Sequence record: MZ475893.1
Strand: one strand, 5' to 3'
Length of the DNA: 64,000 nucleotides
This document shows, in pieces, positions 25,925-58,232 of the stretch; position 1 is the stretch's first letter; every line of letters begins with the position of its first letter. The notes under the pieces are model-generated. The model was not told the origin of the DNA. It ran no database searches and worked only from the letters and a program-made list of their open reading frames with translations. The position numbers and the translations under genes are program-made.

Positions 25925-27688
25925 TTAGAATGCCTTACGTTCAACATTCGAATAGTACGTTTCGTACGGCTCAGAATACAACTCAGGACCGCGCTGCGCA
26001 CGCACAGTAACATAGCCTGTATGGCGATTCACTGCGGTGATTTCGATAGTAGGCTGTTTAGGCTTAATCGTGCTGTAGATAGGCGCGTTCATCGTTGGTG
26101 GGTCTGTCTGAATCTTGTTTACAGATTGCAGTGCAGCACCAGACAGCGTAGGGAACTTAAAGCGCAATTCAGCACGCGTGCGGCCTGTAGCGATCTTGAT
26201 ACTACCAGCAGGCAGTTCAACGCCGCTCTGTTTCAGGTACGCTGCGATGCGACGACCAATACCCGCCAATTGGTTCTTAGCTACAGGGTCCATCAGACCA
26301 TCGAAGCTAATGGCAGCCGGCGGTTGATTCACTGACAGATGCATACCAGTGTTGAAGTAGCCTTCTGCGAGGAAGCGATACAACTGACGAACAATCTCAG
26401 GAGTGTTCTGTGCGATCACAGGCGTCAACAACTCAGGTGGATTGGTCTTCATCGGGTCGCGGTATTCAACCTGACCTTGTGAGTAACCCATACTGATATG
26501 CTTAACACGCGGATAAGCAGACTGCAACGAACCAGTAGAGCGAATCAGGATAGAGCCAGACTTCGCTTGATCATACAGTTCATCGCTGGTGGTTGTTGAG
26601 AACAGGAAGTAGTCGGTAGGCACAGCCATACGACCGATAGCTTCGATTGCTTTCGTCTGTACTTCTTTGATCGTCGAGCCGAACACTACACGACTGCGAT
26701 TAGGCTGAGCAGTAGACACAGCAAAGAATGCGCCGTACACTACCTTCTGATCTTTGACGATAGGCGAAGCAGACTTAACCTTTTGACCGCCAGGCAGTGG
26801 AGGTAGCTTAACGCCCACCAGCTTGCCTTTAGTGATTGCTTTGTTCGCAACAACAGGCTTCAAGGAAGACAGCAGCTTGTTCAACTCAGACCCGTCAAGA
26901 ATCTTCTCCAGCGGAACAACGAGGTTCTGCGGCAGATAGTGTTTCTTGCGCAACGTATAGATAACGGTGTCTTTCTTGATCTGTAACGGAGTAGCCATGT
27001 TACGACCAGCTTGACCAACAGGCTGGAACGTATTCGCTTTGTCCTGACCAACAGAGCCGAACTCTTTGTCAAACACAGACTGACCGATGATGTTCGCTGC
27101 ACGCAGATGGCCACGCACGTTGAACACAATCTTAGGTTCATCTTTCATGCGCAACTCATAGCGGTCACGCGTCAGATAGACCATGCTGAACTTGTCGCCT
27201 TTTTCCAGCTCAAGGTCATACTCATCGTTAGCGTCATCGATAACAACTTTCTTACCCTGATAGGTAGCGTACACGCGAGCGGCAGCAGATTCCGAAGCAA
27301 TCTTCAACGCTACGCCGCAGTTAGACAGCGCGGCAGCATAGTTGGTTGCGTGGAACAGCGCGTCATTCGATTCCGTGATAGCGACTTCTTTACCGCGTAC
27401 GCCCAGCGCAAGGTGGATAGCGCTAGAGCTGGACATGAACACAGTGTGGCCTGTATCTTCATGCTTACCAGCAAAGGACATACCACTAACACGCGACACA
27501 GACAGCGCATTCAGGTGCGGAGTAGTGAACGTATCACCCGCAGCAAAGTCAAAGATTTCACCTTGACGCCACGCGTAACCGATGTTGTTTGAACTCAAGC
27601 CAACAAACGCATCACCCACCTGTCGAATCGTAGTAGGGATAATGCTGAGATCGCGAACGATCTGATTTTGTTTCTGAATGATGGTCAT
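25925..27688 (-). CDS. Hypothetical protein, probable internal head protein (paralog-domain family)
   Basis: 587 aa; IASESAA motif followed by the ~65-aa domain shared with 40442, 49047 and 56286. Confidence 0.75.
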   Translation of the reverse strand: MTIIQKQNQIVRDLSIIPTTIRQVGDAFVGLSSNNIGYAWRQGEIFDFAAGDTFTTPHLNALSVSRVSGMSFAGKHEDTGHTVFMSSSSAIHLALGVRGKEVAITESNDALFHATNYAAALSNCGVALKIASESAAARVYATYQGKKVVIDDANDEYDLELEKGDKFSMVYLTRDRYELRMKDEPKIVFNVRGHLRAANIIGQSVFDKEFGSVGQDKANTFQPVGQAGRNMATPLQIKKDTVIYTLRKKHYLPQNLVVPLEKILDGSELNKLLSSLKPVVANKAITKGKLVGVKLPPLPGGQKVKSASPIVKDQKVVYGAFFAVSTAQPNRSRVVFGSTIKEVQTKAIEAIGRMAVPTDYFLFSTTTSDELYDQAKSGSILIRSTGSLQSAYPRVKHISMGYSQGQVEYRDPMKTNPPELLTPVIAQNTPEIVRQLYRFLAEGYFNTGMHLSVNQPPAAISFDGLMDPVAKNQLAGIGRRIAAYLKQSGVELPAGSIKIATGRTRAELRFKFPTLSGAALQSVNKIQTDPPTMNAPIYSTIKPKQPTIEITAVNRHTGYVTVRAQRGPELYSEPYETYYSNVERKAF

Positions 27689-27696
27689 ATTGATCC

Positions 27697-28131
27697 CTAA
27701 TACGAAACAAGGCGGAAGGCATTCTTCTTGAGAAGATTCAAATTGCCTAACATGAGACTGTAGGCCATTGTGCCGTGCTCTTTAATAAGCTCGTCAGGCA
27801 CAAGTGAACCGAAATAAATTGAGCGGTCTGGACGTGAGTTAATCTCTACGCCACTGGACTTCATTGCATTCGGTACGATGAAGCACCAAGGCTCTGCAAC
27901 GTACTTACCTTTCACATACTGAACTCTATAGCCAACGGCAACGCGCTGGCCTTTCGGCGGGCTGTATGAAAAGACATCCGTCTGCAATTCGAGGGCTTTC
28001 GATACGGAGAAAAGCGCCATAGTCAGAAAGCGTTGCTCGAATTGTGGAATGAATGCGTTGTCTTCGCATATCTTTTTCAGTACAGCCTCTTGCCGTGCTC
28101 GTGGGAACGAAGCGAAGAGGCTCAGGTTCAT
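27697..28131 (-). CDS. Hypothetical protein
   Basis: 144 aa, 4-nt overlap with tmk. Confidence 0.65.
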   Translation of the reverse strand: MNLSLFASFPRARQEAVLKKICEDNAFIPQFEQRFLTMALFSVSKALELQTDVFSYSPPKGQRVAVGYRVQYVKGKYVAEPWCFIVPNAMKSSGVEINSRPDRSIYFGSLVPDELIKEHGTMAYSLMLGNLNLLKKNAFRLVSY

Positions 28132-28742: not shown

Positions 28743-28751
28743 AGGGATTCC

Positions 28752-29243
28752 TTAGGCAAATCGCCCACCACGCCATGCGGCCTTGATGAGCAACTTAGCC
28801 ACGATTTCGTTCTTCATTGTCTTTCGCTTTGCATTGCTACGGACAAATGCAGAGCCGAACTTATTCACGACAATCAAACCAACACCGCTCACGCGTATGC
28901 GTTCGATTATTCTATCGCCGTGAGATTCAAACAGAGCCTCGTCTATGGCAAAGTACATACGCATACAAAACGGTAGATACTTGTGCCACTTCTTATCGGT
29001 ATTGAAATCAGCCCAGCAACTCTTAACCTCAGTGATAATCATATCGCATTTGGTATTAAGGCAGAACACATCTGCTCTTAGATTGCCGTGCTTAATCAAA
29101 CCCAGCTCAACATGACAGGAATAACGTTTGTCAATCCAATAACGCTGAGCTGCCTCAGTGATAAACATAGTCCTATCAGGACGACTCATTGAGGCAAAGA
29201 CTGCCTGTGTTTGACGTTCAGCTTTGCGGCGCTTAAAGGCCAT
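28752..29243 (-). CDS. MmcB-like (DUF1052) PD-(D/E)xK nuclease / DNA repair protein
   Basis: E..L..G.LRADVFCL...IITEVKSCWADFNTDKKWHKYLPFCMRMYFA is the MmcB-family pattern. Confidence 0.8.
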   Translation of the reverse strand: MAFKRRKAERQTQAVFASMSRPDRTMFITEAAQRYWIDKRYSCHVELGLIKHGNLRADVFCLNTKCDMIITEVKSCWADFNTDKKWHKYLPFCMRMYFAIDEALFESHGDRIIERIRVSGVGLIVVNKFGSAFVRSNAKRKTMKNEIVAKLLIKAAWRGGRFA

Positions 29244-29688
29244 ACGAGTCGATAATGTCCAGCGCCTGAGCTAAAATTGGGCGGAGTTTCTTGTCCACCT
29301 TCTTTAGAGCTTTATCAGCACTGAACCACTTACGCTCACGCATGCCTGCTTCATCGTATTCAGTCAGTTCCTGCTTGACCTTCATGATGAACCATTCAAC
29401 GTTCTGGGCGCGGCCGGTCTTGCCTTTAACATACTTCATAATGTCAATGAAGTCTTTAGGCTTACCGAGAATGCCGCCTTCTTCCATGGCTTCTTTAAGC
29501 GCGGAATCCAGTGGCGTCATACCTTTCTCAACGCCACCTTTAGGGAATCCCCAATTGTTTCCGTGTGTGGTGCGAATCAACAAGATCTGCACTTCACCTT
29601 TTTTCTTTTTGTATGGGACAACGCCTGACTGCTTACGCGCTTTCTTTTCAGAAGGCAGCTTAGCAGAGAGTGACACATTCAGCATCAT
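29233..29688 (-). CDS. Nudix hydrolase
   Basis: Nudix box WGFPKGGVEKGMTPLDSALKEAMEEGG; N-terminal SGVVPY..ILLI resembles the diadenosine-polyphosphate/DIPP subtype. Confidence 0.9.
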   Translation of the reverse strand: MMLNVSLSAKLPSEKKARKQSGVVPYKKKKGEVQILLIRTTHGNNWGFPKGGVEKGMTPLDSALKEAMEEGGILGKPKDFIDIMKYVKGKTGRAQNVEWFIMKVKQELTEYDEAGMRERKWFSADKALKKVDKKLRPILAQALDIIDSYGL

Positions 29689-30185
29689 AGATAATCACTT
29701 CCACGAGGCATGTTCACTTCCCAGCGTCCAGAGTTGTCTACCCACAGACCGTTATCTTGCAGGCGCTTGTACGCATCATACAGAGAGCATGAGGCGAGCA
29801 CTTGCAGTTCAGTGCCGAAGTCCGACATTGAATAGCTGTAGATAGATTCAGGCAGGTATGACAGGCGCTGGCCTTCATACGAGTCGTGAACAATACAGCC
29901 ATCAGCATCAGTAACAACAGCGTGAGATGCAACGAGGGTAGGCCCCAGAACAACGATACGATAGTCTGGGTGCTTGTTGTAGTTGCGCTGAATGAACAAC
30001 GCAGCTTCTGCAAACGGACGTGCGACTTGCGCAGCGCGTGTGCAGTTTTGCTCAAACGCAGATTCAGACAAAGAGCGTGCACCAGTCAAATTCATGGCCG
30101 ATGCAAAAATCATTGTTGTCAGATCGTTTGGTGCGATAGCTGTGGGGAAGAACTTCGTGCCCCACGCTTGATCTAAAGAAAGCAT
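29685..30185 (-). CDS. Hypothetical protein
   Basis: GGAG RBS, 166 aa; first gene after a GCTAATTT motif. Confidence 0.65.
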   Translation of the reverse strand: MLSLDQAWGTKFFPTAIAPNDLTTMIFASAMNLTGARSLSESAFEQNCTRAAQVARPFAEAALFIQRNYNKHPDYRIVVLGPTLVASHAVVTDADGCIVHDSYEGQRLSYLPESIYSYSMSDFGTELQVLASCSLYDAYKRLQDNGLWVDNSGRWEVNMPRGSDYL

Positions 30186-30215
30186 GGACCGTCTCCTTAT
30201 TCGATAGTCTAAACT

Positions 30216-30223
30216 AAATTAGC
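30216..30223 (-). promoter_or_regulatory. Candidate late promoter motif GCTAATTT
   Basis: 31 nt upstream of the 30185 start, in a short intergenic gap. Confidence 0.55.
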
Positions 30224-30224
30224 G

Positions 30225-30515
30225 TTAATCAGCAGGACAGATAAGGACTTGTCTGCGATTCTGCATAAAAGACTTTGGAGCAGGGCCACCTATCACGATA
30301 GCGTATTTTAACAGGAAGCCAGGCTTCTTTGTCGCTACGTTACAGCCACCGTGTGAAAGAGCTGCTAGAGCTTGACTGCGAAAAGGACCGGTCAAGCAGA
30401 GTGTATGAGCGAAGAAGGGTTTGCTCACCTTCTTCATTGTTCTGCTCATCAGAGCGCGGATAGCTTCGCATTGTTCCGCAGTAGGCTCAGCACCGCAATA
30501 AACATCGAAATGCAT
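30225..30515 (-). CDS. Hypothetical protein
   Basis: 96 aa, stop/start overlap with the upstream gene. Confidence 0.5.
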   Translation of the reverse strand: MHFDVYCGAEPTAEQCEAIRALMSRTMKKVSKPFFAHTLCLTGPFRSQALAALSHGGCNVATKKPGFLLKYAIVIGGPAPKSFMQNRRQVLICPAD

Positions 30516-40441: not shown

Positions 40442-41119
40442 TCAGTCCTCTACAATAATAAGCACAGGTCTAACAGCATCATCGAACTTGATGAACGCAG
40501 CGCCAACAAGATAGCCACCCTTCTCTACTTGTTTCACGACAGCCTTTTCAAGATCTGTTTCCCACTTATCGCGCTGTGCGGGTTTGTAAGAAGCAAACGT
40601 CTCAGAAGCATCGTAGTAGTTATAGGTACCACCAGTAGGCATTGGGATACGTGCAAGGAACTCTAAGCGACTACAGTTCTTGAACGGGGTCTTGCGTAGC
40701 TCTTGCGTCAGCTTGGTGTTCTCTGATTTAGAGCCAGGCACAGCGGTGAATACTTTCTTAGGCTGAGGCTCACGAGGAGCAGCAGGCATCTTCTCACGCG
40801 CTGGCGTATTCTTGTCGCTGGCTTTCTTAACACGAATACCAGAAACAGTCCCTGTGAATGGACGACTGCGACCAAGCAACGAACGTGCGGCCGTAGCGTC
40901 AACAACAAACACAACAGACGGGTCATCGCGATGCAGCACATAGAACTTGTTACGTGCAGCGGCCTTGATACCGAATACGTCTTTGTCCTCAATATCCGCT
41001 TCGTGTTCTTTGTTCTCGATACTGACCTTGCGCTTACCTTCAAAGCGATACCAGTCGCAGTCATTGATAGACACGATAGGTGTTTTGCGTGAAGCACTCT
41101 CGCTCAGAAAAATAAGCAT
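40442..41119 (-). CDS. Probable head protein of the paralog-domain family
   Basis: GGAG RBS; N-terminal FLSESAS then the shared ~65-aa domain. Confidence 0.7.
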   Translation of the reverse strand: MLIFLSESASRKTPIVSINDCDWYRFEGKRKVSIENKEHEADIEDKDVFGIKAAARNKFYVLHRDDPSVVFVVDATAARSLLGRSRPFTGTVSGIRVKKASDKNTPAREKMPAAPREPQPKKVFTAVPGSKSENTKLTQELRKTPFKNCSRLEFLARIPMPTGGTYNYYDASETFASYKPAQRDKWETDLEKAVVKQVEKGGYLVGAAFIKFDDAVRPVLIIVED

Positions 41120-44513: not shown

Positions 44514-44918
44514 CTAGTCGAGACGCAAGCGAATCAGCGAGCTAGACTCAGAATCAACAACGGTAACGTCATCTTCATCGTCCAGGTCTTCTTCGTCTTC
44601 AACATCATCCGCAGAATCATCTTCGGAGGTATTGAGACTAACTACTTCATCGTCATACAACGACTCGGCTCTTTCTTCCTCGGCAGTAAGCGCTAAGGCC
44701 GCAGACAGAGCAGTAACCGAATCAGCCATGCTTGACGCACTACTCACGGAGTTAACGAGGCAGTTAGCTTCGAAGTTATCAGTGAGTTCGCATTCAAGGA
44801 ACTGATCAGCATCTGGCGCAACAGCAGCTTGAGTTAACAAGCGTGCTACGTCCAACCACTGTCCGTCACGCGCGGCGACAATTGCCAGTGCAGCTAAGGA
44901 ACCAGATAAGGTCTTCAT
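44514..44918 (-). CDS. Small acidic head-associated protein
   Basis: GAGGA RBS; D/E-rich C-terminus ending VDSESSSLIRLRLD. Confidence 0.7.
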   Translation of the reverse strand: MKTLSGSLAALAIVAARDGQWLDVARLLTQAAVAPDADQFLECELTDNFEANCLVNSVSSASSMADSVTALSAALALTAEEERAESLYDDEVVSLNTSEDDSADDVEDEEDLDDEDDVTVVDSESSSLIRLRLD

Positions 44919-44973: not shown

Positions 44974-46074
44974 TTAGCCGCGAACTGCTTTGGCAACGGA
45001 ACGCACGTTCGCCAGAGTGAAGGAGAAGGTGCTTGACAGCAACCAGCCGCGGTCAGTGTTGCCCTGGTTAGCACCAGAGGTAGGAGTAGACTGCGTACCG
45101 CCACGAGTGGTGTACACTGCATGGTAGTCCTGGTCAGCCAGAACATACAGCTCGCCCTGTTTCAGAACGATGTGCTCTGGAGCACGCATACCATCGGTAA
45201 CCAGCTCCATACCCAGCAGGGTACCCAGACGACCGGTGATCAGCAAATCATACTTAGACACTGGGTCCAGAGCAGAAGAGAACTGATCGTTACCGATAAT
45301 GTCGTTCCAGTAGTCCCACGCCATCACGGCGGTAGAGGTCGGCAGCGGCCATGAAGCAACGCTGTTTTTCAGGGTAGACAGCAGACGCGGAGTCAGGTCA
45401 CCGTGAACGTAGGTGATCGGGTTAGCGATACCAACAGCTTCGTCACACGCTTGTTTCCACAGACGGTCTTCTGCAACCATGATAGAAGACAGGCCGTCTT
45501 GCTGCGCACGGTCCAGCAGGTCGCCGTTGATCTGGTCCAGATCCATTTTGCTTACGCGGATGTTGGATTTCAGTTCGAACTCAGCCGGCTGGTAGGTACG
45601 GCCGCGGAACTGGCGGTAACCGAAATCGGTAGGACCAGTTGCGATGATTGCTTCTGCCTGGTGAATTTTCAGTTCGATACGAGCAATGTCGCCCTGACGA
45701 ACGGTAGCACCCTTACAGACTTTGCGCAGCAGACCAGCACGCTCAGCACGGTCTTCGATAGATGCAACGATAGAAGCACCCAGCGAGTCCCACTTAGCGC
45801 CAGAGGTATCAGCAGCAGCTTCGGCGAACAGCTCAATCTTCTCAGCTTCTGACAGACCGTTAGAAGCGTTAGACTGTGAATGAACCAGCTCACCATTTTG
45901 GAACGCGTTAGCCAGACGGCTGATCTGAGAGATCAGGTCTTTCTGGCTTGATGCGTTAATCTCACCAGTGCTTTGGCTCAGAGCTAATTCATTGCTCTTG
46001 CCGAAACGCAGGTCTTCAATCGGGGCGCCATTACGCAGAGTTACTTTCGCGCCGCGCATTAAGGAATTAGTCAT
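44974..46074 (-). CDS. Major capsid protein (HK97 fold)
   Basis: 366 aa, highly biased codons, AGGAG RBS, after scaffold and decoration genes; MVAEDRLW, GRLGTLLGMELVTD pattern. Confidence 0.75.
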   Translation of the reverse strand: MTNSLMRGAKVTLRNGAPIEDLRFGKSNELALSQSTGEINASSQKDLISQISRLANAFQNGELVHSQSNASNGLSEAEKIELFAEAAADTSGAKWDSLGASIVASIEDRAERAGLLRKVCKGATVRQGDIARIELKIHQAEAIIATGPTDFGYRQFRGRTYQPAEFELKSNIRVSKMDLDQINGDLLDRAQQDGLSSIMVAEDRLWKQACDEAVGIANPITYVHGDLTPRLLSTLKNSVASWPLPTSTAVMAWDYWNDIIGNDQFSSALDPVSKYDLLITGRLGTLLGMELVTDGMRAPEHIVLKQGELYVLADQDYHAVYTTRGGTQSTPTSGANQGNTDRGWLLSSTFSFTLANVRSVAKAVRG

Positions 46075-46895: not shown

Positions 46896-48968
46896 TTATG
46901 AGCAGCGCAGACGGGCCAGTTTATCTTCGAACGAGTCAGTGGAAGCTGAACTCTGTGATTGAATAGGTGCACTATCTTCGTCACCCAGAAGCTGCGCTGC
47001 AACGCTTGGTTGCTGCGGCTTAACAGGTGCGGTGACCTGCTGTTGAACTACAGGCTGAGCCTGCTGCACGGTACCGGCTGCGGCTTCGATTGACTGTGCA
47101 ACTTCGTTCTGTGCAGTTTCAGACATAGACATAAGAGTCTGTGCTTTTGCCAGAGAAGTTGTCAGGAAATCTTTACCATGCGCGATAAACGCGTTTTGAA
47201 TCAGCGCGTTCGGGTCTTTGATGCCTGCGGCAGACAGAGAGCGAACGAGAGAATCAACGATCGGGTTACGCACTTCACCCCAGTAGTTTTTGGTGATACC
47301 CAGCTGAGCAGAAGACAGGGCAGCAATCAAACGTTCCTGATGGGAAGCAACAGTGTCGTTGATGGTAGACGATACGCTGGTAGTGGCTTCGTTGATGCGA
47401 GCATCAGATTCAGCAACCAGCAACTTGTCTACAGGCATTTCGATTTGATACGGCATAAAGCCATACGCTTCGACTGTACCTACAACACCGCTTTGAACCA
47501 GGCTGTGTGAAACGGCACGGATGAAATTATCAGTTGCGAAAGATTTACGCGCAACTTCTTCACCAACAACGTTAGACACAGAGTTGAACGTGGCGCGAGC
47601 AACTGGCTGGCCGTCGTAGTACATGTGTACCGATTCGACTTTACCGCCGTTAGAACGGCTGAGGCTTACCAGGGTCGGGTCCAGTTCGCCGTACTGAGCT
47701 TGTACGGTAGACAGGCTGTCGAAGGTGCGATTAACGACTTTAGATTCAGAATCGAAGTCTTCATCGTCGAGGTCGAGATCATCTTCTTCCAGATCTTCGT
47801 CCTCGTCGAGGTCTTCGTCTTCATCAGCGCCAGACTCAGAATCGAAATCTTCGTCTTCGTCTTCGCCTTCGAGGTCCAGATCGTCTTCATCCAGATCTTC
47901 GTCGTCGTCGCCTGCACCAGATTCGGAGTCGAAGTCTTCGTCATCTTCGAGGTCTTCCTCGTCTTCGTCGTCCAGATCATCTTCATCCAGATCTTCGTCG
48001 TCGAGGTCATCCTCTTCGTCTTCGTCTTCCTCTTCGTCTTCGTCGAAGTCATCTTCATCGAAGTCGTCTTCATCTTCATCACCATCAGATGATTCAGAAT
48101 CAAAGTCGTCGTCAGAATCTTCGTCTTCGTCGTCGAGGTCCAGATCGTCTTCGTCCAGGATATCAATGTCGCTGTCGCTATCATCGTCACCGGAGTTAGA
48201 TTCAATCGGCTCGTCGACCAGCGCCGCAGAGCAATGCGCACAGAAGACAGGCTCTTCATCGGAGCTTACAGTAAACGGCTGTTCGCATTTAGCGGAGCAG
48301 CTATAGATGTGAGCTTCGACGGTACCGTCAGCGGCAGCAGAAGACAGAGCAGTAACAGCTTCAGGAGCGTCCTGAGCATCACAGCTATCAACAGCCTGGC
48401 CGGTGTACGGGTCGAATTTGGCAACAGTAGCAGCGTTGAAGCTACCAGTGTTGGACAGCGCTGTGAACGTTTGAGCACCAGACAGGGCCTGCGCGAAGTT
48501 GCGTTGAGCTTCTTCGGCAGTCTCGCCAGTAGCGATCAGGCTCGCGTGTTCAATCTGTTCATCAGCGTTTGCGCTCTCAGCAAGGAACTGTGATACGCGT
48601 TCATCAGTGATTTCTGACAGGTCAGCAGAGCACGACGGGCAGCAGCCCTGAACGAGCGAAGCACTGTCGCTGATAACGTGGCTACCACAACCATCCAGAC
48701 AGATAGTGTAATGCGCCTTCACGTCACCAGCAGAAGACTGAGACTGAACTTCGGCTTTCTCAACCAAATCAGGATGCTCATCCAGCAGTTCGTTACCGCC
48801 GGTTGGGTTGTAGAGGTCAGCGCCACTTTGCGAAGCAAAGCCCACACCGTCAGAAGAACCATAAATCATTAAGTTCTGGCCTAACGCAGTGCGACGAAAG
48901 TTCTCTACTGCCTGATTATGGTTTTTACCGACACACAGGATACCCGCGAGTTGGGTAATCTTTGGCAT
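46896..48968 (-). CDS. Putative scaffold / prohead core protein (acidic tract, two Cys4 ribbons)
   Basis: Start reassigned to MPKIT (GAGG RBS); ~130-aa D/E tract; CLDGC..CPSC and CSAKC..CAHC; upstream of the MCP. Confidence 0.65.
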   Translation of the reverse strand: MPKITQLAGILCVGKNHNQAVENFRRTALGQNLMIYGSSDGVGFASQSGADLYNPTGGNELLDEHPDLVEKAEVQSQSSAGDVKAHYTICLDGCGSHVISDSASLVQGCCPSCSADLSEITDERVSQFLAESANADEQIEHASLIATGETAEEAQRNFAQALSGAQTFTALSNTGSFNAATVAKFDPYTGQAVDSCDAQDAPEAVTALSSAAADGTVEAHIYSCSAKCEQPFTVSSDEEPVFCAHCSAALVDEPIESNSGDDDSDSDIDILDEDDLDLDDEDEDSDDDFDSESSDGDEDEDDFDEDDFDEDEEEDEDEEDDLDDEDLDEDDLDDEDEEDLEDDEDFDSESGAGDDDEDLDEDDLDLEGEDEDEDFDSESGADEDEDLDEDEDLEEDDLDLDDEDFDSESKVVNRTFDSLSTVQAQYGELDPTLVSLSRSNGGKVESVHMYYDGQPVARATFNSVSNVVGEEVARKSFATDNFIRAVSHSLVQSGVVGTVEAYGFMPYQIEMPVDKLLVAESDARINEATTSVSSTINDTVASHQERLIAALSSAQLGITKNYWGEVRNPIVDSLVRSLSAAGIKDPNALIQNAFIAHGKDFLTTSLAKAQTLMSMSETAQNEVAQSIEAAAGTVQQAQPVVQQQVTAPVKPQQPSVAAQLLGDEDSAPIQSQSSASTDSFEDKLARLRCS

Positions 48969-49013
48969 GGTTAAAACCCTCATAAGGAATGAAGTCGTTG
49001 AATCGACAGGTTG

Positions 49014-49046: not shown

Positions 49047-50183
49047 TTAGACTTTTCTGCTATCAATATCTGACTGAGGAATATAGCGATTTTCGAAGTA
49101 TTTATTCACTACTTCGACACCGTTTAGCGTATAAACGTTACGCAAACTATCTCCCCATACCATTAGTTCTGCCAGCGTTGCAAAGTGCTCCGTAGGCACG
49201 GATTTAATGGTCAGTGCATTGTTCGAATCAGGATGGATTCGCTTACCACGAATGGCCTGATCAAACTTCATACGGTCTACGTTACGCAGCATAGTATGGT
49301 CCACAAAGTGAGCCAATTCATGCGTCATAACGTGGGCCATACTTTTGCTGTTATATCCACCCAGCAGACGAACAAGCTGTTGTGGACTAATAGCGATAAC
49401 ACCGTACATAAAGCCACGAATCATGTACGTGCTAATGTGAGAACCGCCTACATCGTTACCTTCCTGCCCGCCCAGAATAGAAACGTACAGGCGCTTAAAC
49501 GGCAGATTAACGTTCAGCCCTACGGCAGGCATTACGTTGTCCTGGATATCCTTTAGCACGAATGCCGGTGGACTAACACCGTTGACTGAGATGTTTAGAC
49601 CAGGGATATTCAGTTCATCTGCACCACGCACTTCGAGATGTACCGTACCACATTTAGGCAGCGGTTGAATTGCGTAGTTGTTTGGCGTACCACCAGCATA
49701 AGCAATATCAGAGTATTGCAGAGGCGTGAATTTACCGAACTGAGGCCTGTCAAGTTCTCGACGTTGACGCGCTTCTTTGGACGCACGATCATCATCGATA
49801 GGAGTATCAACAGGAGGTTTTGGCTCAGGTTCAGGCGGTGGGATTGGCACTTCGGCAGCGGCAGGTTTTGGAACTTTCGCAGGCTTAGGCACTTTGACAG
49901 GCTTAGGCTTAGGCTTAGCAGACTTCTCCTCGTACGGAGTAAAGTCAAAGCTATCGAACAACGCATCAGGCTGAGCAGCAAAAGGTCTGCTATTAGCCAG
50001 TATCATTCCAGCGCTCTCCCCGCTGATTGCAACAGCTTGAGGGTACTTAGGGTGAGCGATGTAATAGAGGTCATCGTTAACTTGATGGAGACCTACGACC
50101 TCGCGGGGCTGCATACGCACACCATTTGAAATCATAGTATCTCCACCTAAGTAACGGACGAATTTGTAGTCCGTTATATCCAT
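49047..50183 (-). CDS. Zincin-like metallopeptidase with N-terminal paralog domain and Pro/Lys linker
   Basis: HVMTHELAHFVDH (HExxH) with downstream EHFA; start reassigned to MDITDY via a TAATG overlap. Confidence 0.7.
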   Translation of the reverse strand: MDITDYKFVRYLGGDTMISNGVRMQPREVVGLHQVNDDLYYIAHPKYPQAVAISGESAGMILANSRPFAAQPDALFDSFDFTPYEEKSAKPKPKPVKVPKPAKVPKPAAAEVPIPPPEPEPKPPVDTPIDDDRASKEARQRRELDRPQFGKFTPLQYSDIAYAGGTPNNYAIQPLPKCGTVHLEVRGADELNIPGLNISVNGVSPPAFVLKDIQDNVMPAVGLNVNLPFKRLYVSILGGQEGNDVGGSHISTYMIRGFMYGVIAISPQQLVRLLGGYNSKSMAHVMTHELAHFVDHTMLRNVDRMKFDQAIRGKRIHPDSNNALTIKSVPTEHFATLAELMVWGDSLRNVYTLNGVEVVNKYFENRYIPQSDIDSRKV

Positions 50184-50962
50184 TAACGCATCCGCAGCAG
50201 GTGTTCTTTGTACGTTGCAGCACAAGCAAACGCTGGGTCATCCACAGAGCTACACTCGAAACCAGTGAGGCCCTTACAGTCACGATACACCAGGCGACCT
50301 GTACGTGCATCCAAATACGTAGGCTTGTTGAACGCTGTGTGCGAACAGAAGTTACGATTCTTCGGCGTTACCATCTGACCACAGATACTGCATTTATAAG
50401 CACGGTAAGTTGTGCCTTTGCTGTATGTGTTCAGTTCACCGCTGAGAATACGATCACAACGCTCCTTACAGCGCGTGCGGTCAAACGCCAGTAACAGAGT
50501 CAGACGCGCATGATTGCCGCGGAAGTTTTTCAGCTTAGACAGGTTCGAGTCAAAGATCATGCCCATTGCTTGGCGATAGTCTTTGTTGTTGTGCTCGATA
50601 AACGTCGGCTTACCAATGAACGTCTGATATGCAAGGCGTCCTTGATCAGGGTTAAACGTCAACCATTCCTGCAAGCTGAATGCATCACCGTTAGTGTTCG
50701 GCAGCTCCGTGATGTTTACCACAACAGGCGCAATGATATAGTCACGGATATCACGCGAGGTGTTGTACATCTCAGCAGCTTTAGGCAGCCACACGTTAAC
50801 GTCGAGGTTAAAAGATCCCGTCTCAATACCGAAACGCGAAGCATCAACACGAATAGACTTAGCGTTTCGGCTAACATCTTCTTTGTGCATATCAATCGCG
50901 TTCAGTCCGACGAGGCCCATGTCTGAGGTATCAAACGACTCAGACTTGATGAGCTGGGTCAT
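50183..50962 (-). CDS. Prohead (capsid maturation) protease
   Basis: PNTNGDAFS, FIEHN (His), ELNTYSKG (Ser), C-terminal CSICG...CSH; upstream of scaffold and MCP. Confidence 0.75.
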   Translation of the reverse strand: MTQLIKSESFDTSDMGLVGLNAIDMHKEDVSRNAKSIRVDASRFGIETGSFNLDVNVWLPKAAEMYNTSRDIRDYIIAPVVVNITELPNTNGDAFSLQEWLTFNPDQGRLAYQTFIGKPTFIEHNNKDYRQAMGMIFDSNLSKLKNFRGNHARLTLLLAFDRTRCKERCDRILSGELNTYSKGTTYRAYKCSICGQMVTPKNRNFCSHTAFNKPTYLDARTGRLVYRDCKGLTGFECSSVDDPAFACAATYKEHLLRMR

Positions 50963-53370: not shown

Positions 53371-54279
53371 TTATACAAGAACGTTACCGCTATCCCACCA
53401 CTTCTTGCCATAGATTTCAGACAGGCGGTAGTCAAGCACGATTGGTTGGTCAAGATCGACCTGAAGGATATCGCGACCTAGTGCAGCGCTATAAACTGTT
53501 TTCTCCTCAGTGTATACGCGTATCTCTAATTCCATGTCGCCTTGCGAATACTTGGGAACGAACGGCACATTCAGATCGCCGTTGAACCCCTGACCGAGCG
53601 TATCGTCAAAGTAAGTAGACATACGAATCTCGGTGCCCTGATTGATAATGGTGGGTGCATACACCATGCGATTGTTATACGCCGTGTAGTCGGCCACCGT
53701 GGACTGTTGAATCAGGCGGCGCTTATAGATGCGCGTTACGCCTTTGTCGTCCACTACCGTACGATACTGATTGTAGAACCAGTTGATCTCATAGAACTTA
53801 ACTGGCTTGAGGCCAGCAGATGAAACCAATGTCGCAGTCATACGGTGATAGGTCTTCTCCGTATTCAGACGGTAGAGCAGAATCTTAAACGCGTACCATT
53901 GGTAAACGTCTAACGTGATTGAGCCTGCATCTGATTGCTGAGTACCGTTAGTGAGGATATACGAGAAGCAATCGCCACCAACGTAACCGCTACGGGGATC
54001 GTAAATGAACGCATCACTAAAGCTATTCAGTTCGACAGTACCCAACAGTGGGTCGCTCACTTTGATTGCAGCAAGGCGCCAACCACGCTGGGCTGGAACC
54101 TTGTCGAGAACGCCTTCTGTGGGACTGTGACCTGTTAGCTCGTCGCGTGCGCCTTGCAGAATTTGATCGATAGTGATTTCAGTTTTACCTGAGTTCTTCA
54201 CACGTATCGTTCTGTTTGGTGCTATTGGCTTATAGTTGCGCCAGTAGTCAAACGTACAAGGCAAAGAGAGCATAGTCAC
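53371..54279 (-). CDS. Virion protein with an Ig/cadherin-like (Big_9-type) domain
   Basis: FIYDPRSGYVGGDCFSYILTNG..QSD.G.ITLDV pattern. Confidence 0.6.
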   Translation of the reverse strand: MTMLSLPCTFDYWRNYKPIAPNRTIRVKNSGKTEITIDQILQGARDELTGHSPTEGVLDKVPAQRGWRLAAIKVSDPLLGTVELNSFSDAFIYDPRSGYVGGDCFSYILTNGTQQSDAGSITLDVYQWYAFKILLYRLNTEKTYHRMTATLVSSAGLKPVKFYEINWFYNQYRTVVDDKGVTRIYKRRLIQQSTVADYTAYNNRMVYAPTIINQGTEIRMSTYFDDTLGQGFNGDLNVPFVPKYSQGDMELEIRVYTEEKTVYSAALGRDILQVDLDQPIVLDYRLSEIYGKKWWDSGNVLV

Positions 54280-56246
54280 TCCAACTTATATTTACGTCGG
54301 AACTCTGCTAGACCCATGACAGGAATGCCTTTGTCCATGGCCTTCTGGAGTTTCGCAGAACCCGAGCCTGGGTCTTTGGCGATAAGAATGGTTGTATCTG
54401 CTTTCATGCTATCTGAGGCAGTACCACCAAGCTCAACGATACGCTGCATCAGTTCACGATCACGAATGCCCGTGAATGCAACGTTAACGCCTTTCAGCTT
54501 AGAACTCGTCACCTGAACGCGTTTCGGTGCCACCAGCTTGACACCGATTTCATTCGCAAGCTGATACGCAGAGACACACGCAAGAGCAATGTCAGGTGAT
54601 TTCGTTTTGATGCCGTGAATGTCCGAGATAGCTTTAGCGAGCGCCAGAGGATTCTGTTTACGCACTAGCTTGTCAAGGTCAGGCACGCTATCGACCACTT
54701 TATCAAACGTAGTGTTAGCGCCGCGCATGAAGTAAGGCGAGCACGCTTTAAGCCACGTATTGACAGCAACGCCTGAGCGTAATGCTTTGAGGTCTTTCGC
54801 AAGCTGAGCGCCACGCGAGTCACCAACCACTTCACGCAGCACACCGATAGACGCAGCGAACAAACGGGCAGGTGTATCAATGCCGGACTCTACGAGCAGC
54901 TTCGACGTACTTGGTCCTGTGTTAGCAACGTCCAATCCTTTGAGGAATGAACTGAGCAGTCGAGTAGTGCCTACCTCAGTCTTGGTATTGATAACAAACT
55001 CAACGCCATTGACTTTGTAAGGCACGTCAGGCAGCTTTGGCTTCTTCGCAGGCTTGAGAATCTCCATGATGTATGGGATTACCTTACCACTACGAATCAG
55101 CTTAACGGTTGCACCCGGGCCAAGAGGTTTCTTAGCGTGAGGTGCAGTCGCTTTGCCTTTAGGCTTGAGGTAGCCGTGCTCAACATAGAATCCATTGTGG
55201 CCATTAGCACGCTGCACAGTGACGCCACCAGTCATCAACGTTGGTGGGAAGATGATAACAGGCTGCAAGATACCGTACTTGGTTTCTTGGTAGATAACAT
55301 CCTCTACCTTAACGATCACTGTGTCAGCTTCTGCATTCATTTTGAACTTGAATGCGTGCTTTGGATTAGATGCAGTCGCTTTAGGGCTGGGTACATCTTC
55401 CGTGAGTACAACACCATCCAGCTCGTAGATAGCTTTAGACAGACGGCGCTCCAAGAACGCGATCAACTCATCTTCTGAATTGAAGCGCTTTGGTGGCGTA
55501 TGCCTAACGACTTCGAATCCCCAGCGCTCTAGCAGGGCGAACTGCTTAGACTGTTTGAGCGTAGCACCGTCACCGCCGATGATAGAGAAGCACACCATGC
55601 GGACGTACTTGAACTCGGACGCTGTTTCGAAGTTACGCACAAGTCCAGACGCAGCATTACGAGCGGCCTTGAAGCGACCACCAGCAGACTCATGCATCTT
55701 GGCCATGAATGTCTTTTGAGGAATGAGTGCCTCGAAGCGCAACACCGTCTGACCTCTGACTGGAATCTTTTTAGGGATTTTCATCGCAGGGATATGATGG
55801 GATACGTCTTTACCGTGAGTAGCATCACCACGGGTATAAGCCTTTACAGGCACACCGTCTTGATACACAATCTCAAGGCTCAAGCCATCGAGCTTGTCCG
55901 TTGCAACGTAGTCCACATCTTTCGACAGTGCTTTGGCAATCTGCTTCGAGCCAGCCTGAAACTGATTGAGACTTGCCATAGGCACAGGCAGCTTAACATC
56001 AGCATCATCACGCTGGCCAATCTTACGAGCCAGCTTAGACTTGGGCCATTTAGCGTCGATGTAGTTACGGATTGAATCGTACACTGCATCGCTCACTAGA
56101 CCTTCATCATCCGTATGATATGCGTTGTCCAGAGCGGTTATTAAGTTACGCACTTGCGTCTGGTTCAAGGTGTCCAAGACCTTTTGAGGGTTCTTGGACA
56201 GTTGCTTGAGACTAACAGAGGCAGAAATAGAAAGCCTTACTTTCAT
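54276..56246 (-). CDS. ligA: NAD+-dependent DNA ligase (Ia, adenylation, OB, HhH and BRCT; no zinc finger)
   Basis: YH...VSDAVYD (domain Ia), DKLDGLS (KxDG), YTRGD, RNAASG, LDGVV, IRSGKVIPYI, VAFTG BRCT. Confidence 0.92.
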   Translation of the reverse strand: MKVRLSISASVSLKQLSKNPQKVLDTLNQTQVRNLITALDNAYHTDDEGLVSDAVYDSIRNYIDAKWPKSKLARKIGQRDDADVKLPVPMASLNQFQAGSKQIAKALSKDVDYVATDKLDGLSLEIVYQDGVPVKAYTRGDATHGKDVSHHIPAMKIPKKIPVRGQTVLRFEALIPQKTFMAKMHESAGGRFKAARNAASGLVRNFETASEFKYVRMVCFSIIGGDGATLKQSKQFALLERWGFEVVRHTPPKRFNSEDELIAFLERRLSKAIYELDGVVLTEDVPSPKATASNPKHAFKFKMNAEADTVIVKVEDVIYQETKYGILQPVIIFPPTLMTGGVTVQRANGHNGFYVEHGYLKPKGKATAPHAKKPLGPGATVKLIRSGKVIPYIMEILKPAKKPKLPDVPYKVNGVEFVINTKTEVGTTRLLSSFLKGLDVANTGPSTSKLLVESGIDTPARLFAASIGVLREVVGDSRGAQLAKDLKALRSGVAVNTWLKACSPYFMRGANTTFDKVVDSVPDLDKLVRKQNPLALAKAISDIHGIKTKSPDIALACVSAYQLANEIGVKLVAPKRVQVTSSKLKGVNVAFTGIRDRELMQRIVELGGTASDSMKADTTILIAKDPGSGSAKLQKAMDKGIPVMGLAEFRRKYKLE

Positions 56247-56285
56247 GCTTTTCTCCGATCGACATTAACACTCTTGTTTACAGTG

Positions 56286-58232
56286 TTATGATGCGATAGG
56301 GTCCTTGTTGACCTCGTAATCTTCCGCCATGTCGTACACGCGATTGAACAGCTTAGGCGCCATATCTTTCACATGCTCGGCATAGTCGAACAGGTTCTGC
56401 TTACGCGCACGATTGACACGCACCTGACGTACTTCGTCTGGGCTATTCGTAATGTCGTACAGCGTATACACAACGATGTTATCAGAGGAGTTATGGGTGC
56501 TTACCTTGAGGACTACCCAATCGCGTTGCAGCTTAGCATCAGCCTTGAATCGGAGGACGTCGCCCTCTTCGGCTTCATCTGCACGCGCATCAGGAGTAGA
56601 CTTGTTAGTTGCGGCAATCTTCTTCGCAGTCTCGGCAGCTTCTTTCTCTGCCTCAGCCACATCAGAATCTTGGTCTTCATCCGCTTCTGTTTCGTCTACG
56701 GCGTCAGAGGTATCGTCATCGGAGTCGTCGGCTTCTTCGTCGTCATCTCCAGACGTATCTTCCTCGTCATCTCCTCCGTCGTCGGCATCATCAGATTCCA
56801 CATCGGAGTCGTCATCTGAATCGTCGGAGCTATCATCCCCATCCTCATCATCAGACTCTGAATCGCTATCGTCAGCATCTTCTTCTGCATCTGGATCGTC
56901 CTCTTCCGTTTCGTCGTCTGGGTCAACGTCACCGCCTTCAGGGTCATCCTCTTCCAGCTCGGAGTCATCGTCGAGATTATCCTCTTCGGAGTCGTCAGGC
57001 TCATCGTCCTTGGTTGAGTTCTTGGCAGAGCCGCCTTTCTTGCGAACTTTAGACTTAGGAGCAGCTTCCTCTTCGTCATCATCTGGCTCATCAATATCAG
57101 ACAGGTCAAGCTCTGAATCGACTTCATTGTCCGCGCTGTCGTCTCCACCAAACAAGGAGCTAACGGTGTCCTCAAGACTGAATACATCACCTGCAAACGG
57201 GCTACGTTGCAGAATGTCTTCAAGGCGTTGCTCGTCGAGGTCCTGCTCAAGATCCAGATGTTCTTCGATAGCATCATCGAGGTTTTCATGCTCAATGACT
57301 TTAGGCAGACGACGACGATCATTCAGGCCAGGGTCATCAGAGTAGATGGTACGCTGTGGTCCTGTAGGCGCTTCAATCTCACCGTCACGCACTTTGCGTC
57401 TGAGGTCACGCATCTCTGCGCTACGCTCACGCGCTTTCTTACGTGCTTCCTGTGCGAGTTCCTTGCGCTGTTGTTTACGCTCAAGGGAAGATGCCTCACG
57501 CCCTAAACGTTCAGCTTCCTCAAGTTCACGGCCTTCGCGATGGCGAGCGCGACGAACCATACGACGATACTGTTTGATAGTATCAACATCAACACTACCA
57601 ACAGGCCAGTCATTAAGAGGCAGAATGTTTGTGTCATGCACAATCAGATCGTACTGAGCATCATCAACTTTCAGGAACAGGCCTTCTGTGTTGATAACGA
57701 TGCCGCCTTTACCTTGACGCAAGAAACGCACGCCAATCATATCGTTGCGGTACATCTTATAAATACCCTTGGTAGTCTTCACAGGATATTCATTGCCAGG
57801 CACCATGCGCCATTGATAGTTGGCAAAGTCAACGCCATACACAGCTTCTGACTTAACCGATTTTGGCATAAAGCGAGGAGCATCAAACAGGGTGCGATTG
57901 ATCTTACGCTCAAGGCTCTTAGCGCCAGCAACGCGTGCAGTAGTACCAGCCTCACGTTTAACCACAGCTGGTGGCTTACGCAACTTAGAGCTACGTTCAA
58001 TGAGGAACAGACCTGTCGTTTTGTCGAGAGGGAAATCGACGTGCGGCATGTCTGGGAAAATCAGTGTATAACGACCACCATTCCTGAGTGGCAGAATACC
58101 AAAAGTGTCGCCATTACGAATCATACGTTTGTGTGATCGCTGCGTCACCTCTCGTCCACGTGAACCAGTAAACTGCATCCACGCGTACTTCGATACGGCA
58201 TCTTCATATGATGCGGATTCGGAGAGTACCAT
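56286..58232 (-). CDS. Acidic probable internal head protein (two paralog-domain copies, coiled coil, D/E tract)
   Basis: N-terminal VLSESAS; two copies of the shared domain; ~170-aa D/E-rich tract. Confidence 0.75.
   Translation of the reverse strand: MVLSESASYEDAVSKYAWMQFTGSRGREVTQRSHKRMIRNGDTFGILPLRNGGRYTLIFPDMPHVDFPLDKTTGLFLIERSSKLRKPPAVVKREAGTTARVAGAKSLERKINRTLFDAPRFMPKSVKSEAVYGVDFANYQWRMVPGNEYPVKTTKGIYKMYRNDMIGVRFLRQGKGGIVINTEGLFLKVDDAQYDLIVHDTNILPLNDWPVGSVDVDTIKQYRRMVRRARHREGRELEEAERLGREASSLERKQQRKELAQEARKKARERSAEMRDLRRKVRDGEIEAPTGPQRTIYSDDPGLNDRRRLPKVIEHENLDDAIEEHLDLEQDLDEQRLEDILQRSPFAGDVFSLEDTVSSLFGGDDSADNEVDSELDLSDIDEPDDDEEEAAPKSKVRKKGGSAKNSTKDDEPDDSEEDNLDDDSELEEDDPEGGDVDPDDETEEDDPDAEEDADDSDSESDDEDGDDSSDDSDDDSDVESDDADDGGDDEEDTSGDDDEEADDSDDDTSDAVDETEADEDQDSDVAEAEKEAAETAKKIAATNKSTPDARADEAEEGDVLRFKADAKLQRDWVVLKVSTHNSSDNIVVYTLYDITNSPDEVRQVRVNRARKQNLFDYAEHVKDMAPKLFNRVYDMAEDYEVNKDPIAS

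Follow-up and report, generated by a model that had tools for sequence, protein, structure and literature searches.

Results

The window analysed here, 64,000 nucleotides of sequence record MZ475893.1, derives from the Erwinia jumbo phage pEa_SNUABM_45 of the PaBG/Y3 group, and all of its genes lie on the minus strand. A preliminary description of this DNA had proposed that a recurrent hydrophobic-S-x-S(-A) motif is a prohead-protease site and head-packaging signal. Each string that it quoted is present in the sequence, the accompanying coordinates being those of ORF ends and not of the motifs themselves. The motif proved real and conserved in many proteins but uneven: one quoted instance (LSESAF) is not conserved and that on the DNA ligase is confined to a subclade.

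The candidate protease (259 aa, 50183..50962, minus strand) was identified by its match to phrog_18299, head maturation protease (E 1e-125); sequence profiles linked it to neither Pfam S77 nor S78. Its AF2 model (pLDDT 84) matched T4 gp21 (5jbl) with Z 10.2 and an rmsd of 2.8 Å over 138 residues, and the next structural matches were herpesvirus proteases (HCMV, EBV and KSHV; Z ∼5). As modelled, the protease has the T4 gp21 fold. It bears a zinc-ribbon insertion, and H124, S181, C191, C194 and C206 are invariant in 35 homologues. The motif KSESF occupies residues 6-10, with S-E-S-F at residues 7-10 (window 50933-50944), inside a stretch (residues 1-19) that is disordered in the model, and S-x-S-F is the consensus at this N-terminus in the 35 homologues, down to ∼30% identity. 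In T4, gp21 itself contains a copy of its cleavage motif at residue 9 (PMC9026906). The gene immediately downstream of that for the protease, 49047..50225 (minus strand), encodes a protein with two KMPT-N domains (PF20294, two stretches) and an H-E-L-A-H zinc-peptidase motif; its true start is probably an internal ATG (M-D-I-T-D-Y), and it bears no S-x-S leader.

The major capsid protein (366 aa, 44974..46074, minus strand; phrog_2522), which has the HK97 fold, contains two sites. Site 2, H-S-Q-S-N-A (residues 65-70, window 45865-45882), falls within the sole disordered internal linker of the AF2 model (pLDDT 83 overall, below 50 at residues 67-72), and HK97-fold matches to the model begin at residues 66-112. 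By computation, a cut after S68 would take off ∼18% of the mass, which fits the loss of ∼20% reported for the PaBG capsid protein. This site has the form S-x-S/T only in the Erwinia/Dickeya clade. Site 1, L-S-Q-S-T (residues 32-36, window 45967-45981), is in the N-terminal segment and reads L-[SD]-x-[SKRT]-T-G-E across ∼95 homologues. In many of these it is D-x-K-T with the adjoining T-G-E kept; a structural role for site 1 is therefore possible, as is a true cleavage site after the Glu.

Between the protease and capsid genes lies an acidic scaffold-like protein of 695 aa (46896..48983, minus strand; 174 D+E versus 32 K+R). Here the many motif copies noted earlier in the scaffold were borne out: S-x-S occurs 22 times where 8.4 copies are expected (z 5.8, the second highest z-score in the genome), with a similar enrichment in 16 orthologues (z 4.4-6.3). 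When X.Y pairs were ranked de novo in this protein, S-x-S came second only to D.D. The sites are conserved and include four F-D-S-E-S repeats, the enrichment extends beyond the repeats, and a conserved x-S-Q-S-S-A-S is followed immediately by a C-terminal L-A-R-L-R tail. PHROG and RefSeq label this protein 'ATPase', an assignment that no Pfam match supports. Directly downstream of the capsid gene is a small acidic protein of 134 aa (44514..44918, minus strand; 34 D+E versus 6 K+R), in which a D-S-E-S-S-S cluster (residues 122-127, window 44538-44555) directly precedes a C-terminal L-I-R-L-R-L-D tail. Its orthologues keep both cluster and tail, and an L-x-R-L-R tail is common to the two acidic proteins.

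Two of the best N-terminal examples and the internal IASESAA belong to paralogues sharing a KMPT-N domain, a relationship that the preliminary description overlooked. The 225-aa protein (40442..41119, minus strand; PF20294 E 6e-19, residues 21-85) has the leader M-L-I-F-L-S-E-S-A-S (residues 1-10, motif at window 41090-41107), and its orthologues start M-L-[IL]-[LF]-[LI]-S-[EAV]-S-A-[SR]. Its gene is flanked by two tail-tube paralogues, which counts against the prohead-protease reading. The 648-aa protein (56286..58232, minus strand; PF20294 E 3e-17, residues 16-81) begins M-V-L-S-E-S-A-S (residues 1-8, motif at window 58209-58226); orthologues have M-[VI]-L-S-[EVA]-S-A-S and, in the Yoloswag clade, M-H-S-L-S-A-T. 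In the 587-aa protein (25925..27688, minus strand), I-A-S-E-S-A-A is internal (residues 130-136, window 27281-27301), just N-terminal of the domain (PF20294 E 8e-20, residues 139-201), and I-A-S-[ETQ]-S-A is kept in 15 loci. Residues 1-129, which end at the motif, evolve faster than the domain (48-61% versus 72-93% identity), as would be expected for a propeptide.

S-x-S-A is kept in these three proteins (two leaders, one internal), in the Nudix hydrolase and in a 1944-aa SNF2 helicase. The Nudix hydrolase (151 aa, 29233..29688, minus strand; PF00293 E 2e-14) starts MMLNVSLSAK, its start overlapping the upstream stop by 4 nt. V-S-L-S-A-K (window 29659-29676) sits in an N-terminal extension of ∼17 residues, and V-S-L-S-A-[KR] is retained in Y3 and Yoloswag despite diverging flanks. 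PaBG Nudix homologues have no extension and begin at the fold itself; the leader is modular, carried by the Nudix hydrolase of the Erwinia clade but not by that of PaBG. The NAD-dependent DNA ligase (656 aa, 54276..56246, minus strand; assigned by its ligase domains) starts MKVRLSISAS, with L-S-I-S-A-S-V-S at window 56217-56234. This motif, listed earlier as an example, is present in the window's clade and at loci L020 and L021 but missing from most relatives. Because the other relatives' ligases start M-Q-I-S-L-K or M-A-V-Q-L-S-L-K, the tag is a 6-residue serine-repeat insertion; the PaBG ligase has no leader, and the tag is a weak candidate for one.

The helicase carries S-x-S-A in a leader near its start. 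Its PaBG orthologue, gp202, forms a Coomassie-visible virion band (PMC7412058 Table 1) and has S-L-S-A at residues 9-12 despite ∼31% identity. The PaBG KMPT-N proteins are without the motif, and the PaBG acidic orthologue is not enriched in S-x-S. Outside the window, S-x-S-A is also conserved near the N-terminus of three proteins of unknown function.

Tail, sheath and tube proteins start without the motif, in agreement with what had been said of the tail genes. LSESAF did not stand as an instance: in the 166-aa protein (29685..30185, minus strand) L-S-E-S-A-F is internal (residues 39-44, window 30054-30071), and several orthologues replace the serines (ALAESA). We regard it as a chance case and not as part of the system.

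Matches to the loose pattern [LIVMFA]-S-x-S are frequent, 50 of them in the 20,696 aa that the window encodes, and the whole proteome holds ∼570 S-x-S. The stricter [LIVMF]-S-x-S-[AF], starting within the first 12 residues, was found 6 times against 0.7-0.9 expected, a count reached by 0/500 shuffles in this phage, Y3 and Yoloswag. This pattern was picked post hoc and ranked 2nd to 5th among ∼6,200 comparable patterns. The N-terminal enrichment is seen in three genomes (6 versus ∼0.8 expected), but P is roughly 0.2 after Bonferroni correction in one genome, and by itself the enrichment fails multiple testing in a single genome.

Conservation reads as the stronger evidence. Both serines are retained but x differs among orthologues of the 225-, 648- and 587-aa proteins, the Nudix hydrolase, the protease and at both capsid-protein sites, and altogether two serines are kept with a free x across eight protein families. 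Serines inside S-x-S are conserved in 45/68 cases (66%) versus 55/136 (40%) for other serines (Fisher p = 6e-4), and conservation of the x position is not above average. Six unrelated proteins (Nudix, helicase, protease and proteins of 219, 270 and 429 aa) retain S-x-S, with x free to vary, among orthologues that are 47-80% identical. The Yoloswag Nudix and one unrelated protein have an identical start, M-E-I-I-V-S-L-S. Serine codons vary from copy to copy, and the signal therefore acts at the peptide level.

Discussion

The motif is found at the disordered N-terminus of the protease, at the boundary between capsid propeptide and HK97 fold, in the acidic scaffold-like protein and in N-terminal leaders on unrelated enzymes. 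These positions are where maturation-protease sites are expected. Building on this placement, on the conservation and enrichment of the motif, on the protease fold and on the presence of the helicase in PaBG virions, we give a probability of about 0.5 to the reading that S-x-S is the recognition and cleavage site of this clade's gp21-fold prohead protease, with leaders resembling the T4 capsid targeting sequence (CTS). The S-x-S specificity suggested earlier is thus supported in part, by a conserved motif at the expected maturation sites and by the protease fold, whereas cleavage at the motif, the position of the scissile bond and the targeting of cargo by leaders are what we infer from them.

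According to this model, a serine protease of the T4 gp21/herpesvirus-assemblin fold would recognise S-x-S, usually with a hydrophobic residue before and a small residue (A, S, G, T or N) after. Within the prohead it would trim its own N-terminus, shorten the capsid protein by ∼68 residues through a cut in the disordered linker that precedes the HK97 fold, and chop the acidic scaffold-like proteins, releasing their C-terminal L-x-R-L-R anchors. From cargo proteins it would take off leaders fitting M-x(1-8)-hydrophobic-S-x-S-A, which, by analogy with the 10-residue T4 CTS, may also steer cargo to the prohead core. As cargo we would count the SNF2 helicase, the Nudix hydrolase, the KMPT-N proteins and, with less certainty, the ligase; once packaged, these could reach the host along with the DNA. 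For packaging in the virion, the helicase is a plausible candidate, the Nudix hydrolase a possible one and the ligase a weak one.

Conservation and enrichment point to selection on the serines but are silent on what acts on them. The motif could serve only for binding or targeting, be a serine modification site or be a substrate of the KMPT-N zincin encoded at 49047-50225 beside the protease gene, and the acidic D-S-E-S context of many sites, together with a glycosyltransferase gene (52127-53359) in the same module, would suit such roles. We consider this unlikely: leaders 3-12 residues from the start, the protease N-terminus and the capsid propeptide/fold boundary match T4- and phiKZ-type maturation logic better than a modification site, and within the window we saw no kinase and no match to a known glycosylation sequon. 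It is similarly improbable that there is no single system, and that KMPT-N ancestry, serine-rich acidic low-complexity tracts, repeat insertions and chance together produced the pattern while the protease acts at other sites. Among the best cases, two or three are indeed paralogues, LSESAF is not conserved, the ligase tag resembles a TCT-NNT repeat expansion, most instances are missing in PaBG, and the pattern ranks no higher than 2nd to 5th among comparable ones. Yet the KMPT-N paralogues keep the motif although the domain is only ∼20-25% identical (estimated by eye), the unrelated proteins listed above retain it at 47-80% identity, the sites in the acidic protein are conserved and enriched beyond its repeats, and S-L-S-A is kept at the start of the PaBG helicase.

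Far less probable is classical Glu-specific cleavage, in which L/A-S-E followed by S would be cut after Glu as by the T4 gp21, phiKZ and SPN3US proteases. Glu is frequent as x (L-S-E-S twice, A-S-E-S, K-S-E-S, F-D-S-E-S four times), T-G-E is strongly conserved in the capsid protein, and SPN3US gp245 cuts after A-x-E with Ser preferred at P1' (PMC10052503). Nevertheless, orthologues swap the Glu for V, A, T, Q, H, L or S while both serines stay, and Glu is absent from the leaders of the Nudix hydrolase, the ligase, the helicase and the 219- and 270-aa proteins.

Cleavage at S-x-S by the prohead protease would parallel T4. Common to both are the protease fold, the protease's own motif ∼9 residues from the N-terminus and acidic core or scaffold proteins with many cut sites, those in this phage being predicted. 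T4 cargo (IPI-III, Alt) likewise bears short N-terminal leaders that end in the protease motif on otherwise unrelated proteins, and in both systems the leader-bearing cargo varies among related phages (PMC9026906). The motif differs, S-x-S plus a small residue here and L/I-x-E in T4, as does the protease, with its zinc-ribbon insertion and lack of sequence-level Pfam S77 similarity; the leaders, of 6-12 residues, are of other composition, and their cleavage and targeting roles are proposed by analogy. With phiKZ gp175 (S/A/G-x-E) and SPN3US gp245 the system would share a jumbo-myovirus setting, a small P3, a free P2 and N-terminal propeptides on many head and ejection proteins, along with Ser as the favoured P1' residue of SPN3US. 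A cut after the second serine would put Ser and not Glu at P1; the phage has an HK97-type capsid protein of 366 aa and is a member of the unrelated PaBG/Y3 ('Lupandier') group (PMC7412058). The literature searched yielded no comparable S-x-S protease signal, nor any results of N-terminal sequencing or semi-tryptic peptide analysis for the PaBG/Y3 group; if the reading is true, S-x-S is a previously undescribed specificity of a capsid-maturation protease.

Herpesvirus assemblin sites have the form (V/L)-x-A followed by S. Assemblin belongs to the same fold superfamily (Z ∼5), with small residues around the scissile bond and hydrophobic ones upstream, but is very distant, acts in another host and virion, and uses an A/S motif rather than S-x-S. 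In the staphylococcal phage 80alpha, the host's L27 protease, Prp, cuts N-terminal leaders of the capsid and scaffold proteins. There too, one dedicated protease serves a short common leader on unrelated proteins; Prp, however, is a host cysteine protease with another motif, restricted to Firmicutes, whereas the candidate here is a phage-encoded serine protease. Virion-packaged anti-host enzymes include the P1 helicase-methylase DarB, T4 Alt and MuF-fused or 'polyvalent' proteins. The giant SNF2 helicase in virions of the relative PaBG resembles these, although the address proposed here is a short leader and not a MuF or portal fusion. For Nudix proteins of myoviruses, packaging in the head has likewise been predicted (PMC9503650).

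Genome context and head module

The window matches positions 62,001-126,000 of pEa_SNUABM_45 (MZ475893.1; 263,891 bp) with 100% identity. This phage is a jumbo myovirus whose relatives include Erwinia phages Y3, Alexandra and Yoloswag, the Dickeya AD1 and JA phages and Yersinia phage fHe-Yen9-02, with Pseudomonas phages PaBG, Lu11 and NCTB more distant. Hosts of this PaBG/Y3 lineage belong to Erwinia, Dickeya, Yersinia, Salmonella and Pseudomonas. The group including PaBG has been named 'Lupandier' (PMC7412058).

The minus strand carries all real genes of the window. In order of transcription, the head module runs from a protease gene (50183-50962, minus strand, as are all its genes) through those of a protein that combines two KMPT-N domains with an HExxH zinc-peptidase motif (the zincin, 49047-50225), a very acidic 695-aa protein (46896-48983), a 240-aa virion protein (46138-46860) and the 366-aa major capsid protein (44974-46074), to that of a 134-aa acidic protein (44514-44918). 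The location of the protease gene, in one module with scaffold-like and major capsid genes, is that expected of a prohead protease.

Frequency of the S-x-S motif

The preliminary description had proposed that a recurring S-x-S motif is a candidate prohead-protease and head-packaging signal. Every string quoted in its support was found, the positions attached to them being ORF ends and not those of the motif. The loose pattern is common: [LIVMFA]-S-x-S occurs 50 times within the window (20,696 residues) and S-x-S about 570 times in the pEa_SNUABM_45 proteome, so that counts alone prove little. Outside the window, a 442-codon ORF (252089-253417 of the record, minus strand), likely a spurious or low-complexity frame, inflates the proteome-wide counts with its 157 serines.

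Genome-wide counts were made on the genome rebuilt from MZ475893.1 with crude gene calls (longest ORF plus SD rule). On these calls, [LIVMF]-S-x-S-[AF] starting in the first 12 residues occurred six times against 0.7-0.9 expected, a number reached in 0 of 500 N-terminal shuffles, and a similar excess was present in Y3 and Yoloswag. This pattern was picked after the data had been seen; among about 6,200 comparable patterns it ranked 2nd, 5th and 2nd in the three genomes, which corresponds to roughly P = 0.2 after Bonferroni correction in one genome. The N-terminal enrichment is suggestive, not decisive. Enrichment numbers for PaBG are unreliable because crude gene calling performs poorly on its GC-rich genome.

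Conservation of the two serines

Conservation, as judged from aligned orthologues, is a stronger argument for the motif than N-terminal counts. Among 35 related loci from IMG/VR and three whole relatives, the two serines are kept and the middle residue changes. Thus, orthologues of the 225-aa protein (40442-41119) begin M-L-[IL]-[LF]-[LI]-S-[EAV]-S-A, those of the 648-aa protein (56286-58232) have L-S-[EVA]-S-A-S or H-S-L-S-A-T, and those of the 587-aa protein (25925-27688) have I-A-S-[ETQ]-S-A. The Nudix hydrolase (29233-29688) retains V-S-L-S-A-[KR] within diverged flanks (55% identity), and the protease S-[EAHQTKRV]-S-F across 35 homologues, down to about 30% identity. The two capsid sites vary as L-S-[QES]-S-T (site 1) and H-S-[QTHEN]-S (site 2). 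One quoted case, LSESAF at 29685, had to be abandoned: it is not conserved, and orthologues have alanines for the serines.

When six proteins were pooled and compared with the three most distant orthologue sets, 45 of 68 serines inside S-x-S were conserved, as against 55 of 136 elsewhere (Fisher p = 6e-4), and the middle position was no more conserved than an average residue. The serine codons vary from copy to copy (AGC/AGT, TCC/TCC, TCT/TCT, TCA/TCT among others), indicating selection on the peptide and not on the DNA; an accidentally translated DNA-level signal, whether promoter, RBS or downstream box, was ruled out on the same grounds.

A predicted gp21-like fold in the protease

Sequence searches with the protease were empty. 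Pfam gave no match at E up to 10, including Peptidase_S77, S78 and S80; phmmer and profile searches gave none to PDB sequences; and comparison of the family profile with T4 gp21 and HK97 gp4 by hhalign gave a probability below 1%. Membership of S77/S78 by sequence was therefore rejected, and it is fold comparison that makes the link. An AlphaFold2 model built with 35 homologues (pLDDT 84, pTM 0.82) aligned with T4 gp21 (5jbl_A) over 138 of 165 residues, at Z 10.2 and with an rmsd of 2.8 A (VIA-align), the next row having Z 5.6 and herpesvirus proteases following at Z about 5. The top three Foldseek matches were all 5jbl (prob 0.8), and the ESM-Atlas feature neighbours carry Peptidase_S78, S77 and S80. 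As modelled, the protease has a T4 gp21/assemblin-like fold. Candidate catalytic residues are H124 and S181 (in Y-S-x-G), 57 residues apart and invariant in the 35 homologues.

The model is disordered over residues 1-19, where S-E-S-F lies. The cleavage motif recognised by T4 gp21 is also present in gp21 itself, at residue 9 (PMC9026906), and the pEa_SNUABM_45 protease likewise has its candidate motif near the N-terminus (residues 7-10). The two proteins differ in an inserted Cys/His cluster (C191, C194, C206, H208 and C229, within residues about 186-230), invariant or nearly so in the 35 homologues, which looks like a zinc ribbon and has no counterpart in T4 gp21.

The gene encoded right after the protease specifies, in the zincin with its two KMPT-N domains and H-E-L-A-H motif, a second predicted peptidase of the head module. 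Its TTG start, which overlaps the protease gene, is probably wrong, orthologues backing an internal ATG (M-D-I-T-D-Y).

Motif copies in scaffold-like and capsid proteins

Many copies had been claimed for the scaffold, and the 695-aa protein bears this out. It is encoded between the protease and capsid genes and contains 174 acidic versus 32 basic residues. Its own composition predicts 8.4 S-x-S, whereas 22 are present (z 5.8); in the genome, only a serine-rich, probably spurious ORF scores higher. De novo, S.S was its second most enriched X.Y pair after D.D, likewise in Y3 and Yoloswag, and the S-x-S enrichment extended to all of the 16 orthologues (z 4.4-6.3). Among the sites are four F-D-S-E-S repeats and, directly ahead of a C-terminal K-L-A-R-L-R tail, an invariant x-S-Q-S-S-A-S. 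The 134-aa protein ends with D-S-E-S-S-S followed by L-I-R-L-R-L-D, so that two otherwise unrelated acidic proteins have in common an L-x-R-L-R tail after serine clusters. Scaffold or core proteins from which a protease releases the coat-binding ends would be expected to have just such a shared basic tail preceded by S-x-S clusters; the tail may be a coat-binding or portal-binding anchor.

No ATPase domain was found in the 695-aa protein, despite its 'ATPase' label in PHROGs and RefSeq. Its N-terminal half has two CxxC...CxxC modules, and a poly-Asp/Glu tract of about 150 residues, within which the F-D-S-E-S repeats lie, precedes the basic tail.

In the capsid model (pLDDT 83), residues 67-72 form the single internal low-confidence stretch, and HK97-fold structures align from residues 66-112 on. 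Site 2 (H-S-Q-S-N-A, residues 65-70) places S66-Q-S68 exactly at this stretch and at the start of the HK97 fold, and a cut after S68 would take off a computed 18% or so of the mass. For PaBG, a loss of about 20% from the maturing capsid protein is reported, together with processing of several virion proteins (PMC7412058); a literature search found no other account of proteolysis in the PaBG/Y3 group. Only within the Erwinia/Dickeya/Yersinia clade does site 2 read S-x-S. Site 1 (L-S-Q-S-T, residues 32-36) is replaced by D-x-K-T in many homologues with the following T-G-E kept, and may therefore be structural.

Proposed explanation for the motif and its rivals

For T4 and for the phiKZ/SPN3US giants it is established that maturation proteases act at short consensus sites and that leaders direct the loading of proteins into capsids; to our knowledge, neither has been described in the PaBG/Y3 lineage. 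The most economical reading, to which we assign a probability of about 0.5, is that the gp21-fold prohead protease recognises S-x-S plus a small residue and that the short N-terminal leaders would act like the T4 capsid targeting sequence (CTS). Cleavage directed by Glu is highly improbable. The Glu-specific sites of giant phages (S/A/G-x-E) have an invariant P1 Glu, whereas orthologues show E, V, A, T, Q, H, L or S between the two serines and several leaders are without any Glu; a cut after Glu (L-S-E, then S) was rejected for want of Glu conservation.

Two further explanations are each unlikely, to an equal degree, though better placed than Glu-directed cleavage: the motif could be functional but of another kind, or the copies could be a heterogeneous mix with no common function. 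The KMPT-N proteins of PaBG are without the motif and the PaBG orthologue of the 695-aa acidic protein is not enriched in S-x-S, which means either that S-x-S specificity is clade-limited or that our interpretation is incomplete.

A candidate leader shared by unrelated proteins

The leader is common to the Nudix hydrolase, the NAD-dependent DNA ligase (54276-56246), two KMPT-N proteins and, outside the window, four proteins conserved in Y3 and/or Yoloswag. The latter are a 1944-aa SNF2-type helicase (148407-154241 of the record, minus strand), a 219-aa and a 270-aa protein encoded side by side (206529-208010) and a 429-aa protein (159925-161214). In Yoloswag, the Nudix hydrolase and the unrelated 219-aa homologue begin with eight identical residues, M-E-I-I-V-S-L-S. 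If S-x-S is the protease motif, these leaders would have the makings of a CTS, namely a short N-terminal peptide on unrelated proteins that ends in that motif. Signal peptides and lipoproteins were ruled out, the leaders being too short and having neither a hydrophobic core nor Cys.

The N-terminal extension that bears the motif on the Nudix hydrolase is found throughout the Erwinia clade but on neither PaBG Nudix homologue, which looks like gain of a portable tag. The tag on the ligase is confined to the window's clade and the related loci L020 and L021. Other relatives' ligases start M-Q-I-S-L-K or M-A-V-Q-L-S-L-K, so the tag is a six-residue insertion, I-S-A-S-V-S, encoded by a TCT-NNT-like repeat; the PaBG ligase also lacks it. 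The window-clade ligase is 80% identical to that of the Yoloswag-like loci L020/L021 versus 72% to nearer relatives, pointing to exchange of ligase alleles between lineages.

Possible packaging of leader-bearing enzymes

In the PaBG virion proteome, band 1 is the 221-kDa 'RuvB helicase-like' gp202 (PMC7412058, Table 1). This abundant virion protein and the 1944-aa helicase are orthologues (E 5e-161), and gp202 begins M-G-S-L-F-T-L-N-S-L-S-A-A, so that one leader-bearing enzyme is a virion component in a relative, recalling the packaged helicase-methylase DarB of phage P1. It is the only leader-bearing protein documented in virions; a literature search found no usable proteomics for AD1, Yoloswag, fHe-Yen9-02 or phage G. 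Head packaging of myovirus Nudix proteins has been predicted independently by comparative work (PMC9503650). We consider it somewhat more likely than not that the helicase is packaged, somewhat less than an even chance that the Nudix and KMPT-N proteins are, and doubtful that the ligase is, the tag itself being the basis in its case.

A wider proposal is clearly less likely than the protease reading: that PaBG/Y3 jumbo phages combine an undescribed Ser-x-Ser prohead-protease specificity with a portable N-terminal tag of 6-12 residues that loads a changeable set of nucleic-acid enzymes for injection. The cargo would comprise the 220-kDa SNF2 helicase, the Nudix hydrolase, KMPT-N proteins and, in some lineages, the NAD-dependent DNA ligase, and related phages would differ in which genes had gained or lost a tag. 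If true, both the specificity and the cargo set would be new, in an unstudied jumbo-phage lineage. Were S-x-S the site, mature capsid and cargo termini would be predictable from sequence across the lineage, the proteins injected by these phages would become identifiable, a short tag would be at hand for loading foreign proteins into a large capsid, and the P1 specificity of the gp21/assemblin fold would not be fixed on Glu among giant phages. A giant helicase may belong to the injected set, as may a Nudix enzyme with the potential to weaken host defences based on nucleotides; an injected DNA ligase, if real, would be a new kind of first-minute counter-defence.

KMPT-N proteins and their surroundings

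The 225-, 648- and 587-aa proteins are paralogues, a relationship missed by the preliminary description, and in each a KMPT-N domain (PF20294) directly follows the motif, which is internal in the 587-aa protein. In the whole 264-kb genome the domain occurs five times, in four proteins that are all encoded within the window, and four of the five copies score above the curated cut-off of 28.9 bits (Pfam HMM). The fourth protein, the zincin, is without the motif. No literature on KMPT-N was found, and the 225-aa protein had no match in the ESM Atlas. About 1 kb (24869-25924) between a PAAR-like gene and the 587-aa gene is without a convincing coding-strand ORF.

The 225-aa gene is flanked by two tail-tube paralogues (39924-40439 and 41168-41680, minus strand), both phrog_45, a setting that counts against the protease and packaging reading. 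Together with the pair of sheath genes known from the PaBG/Y3 group, these paralogues suggest duplication of tail structural genes.
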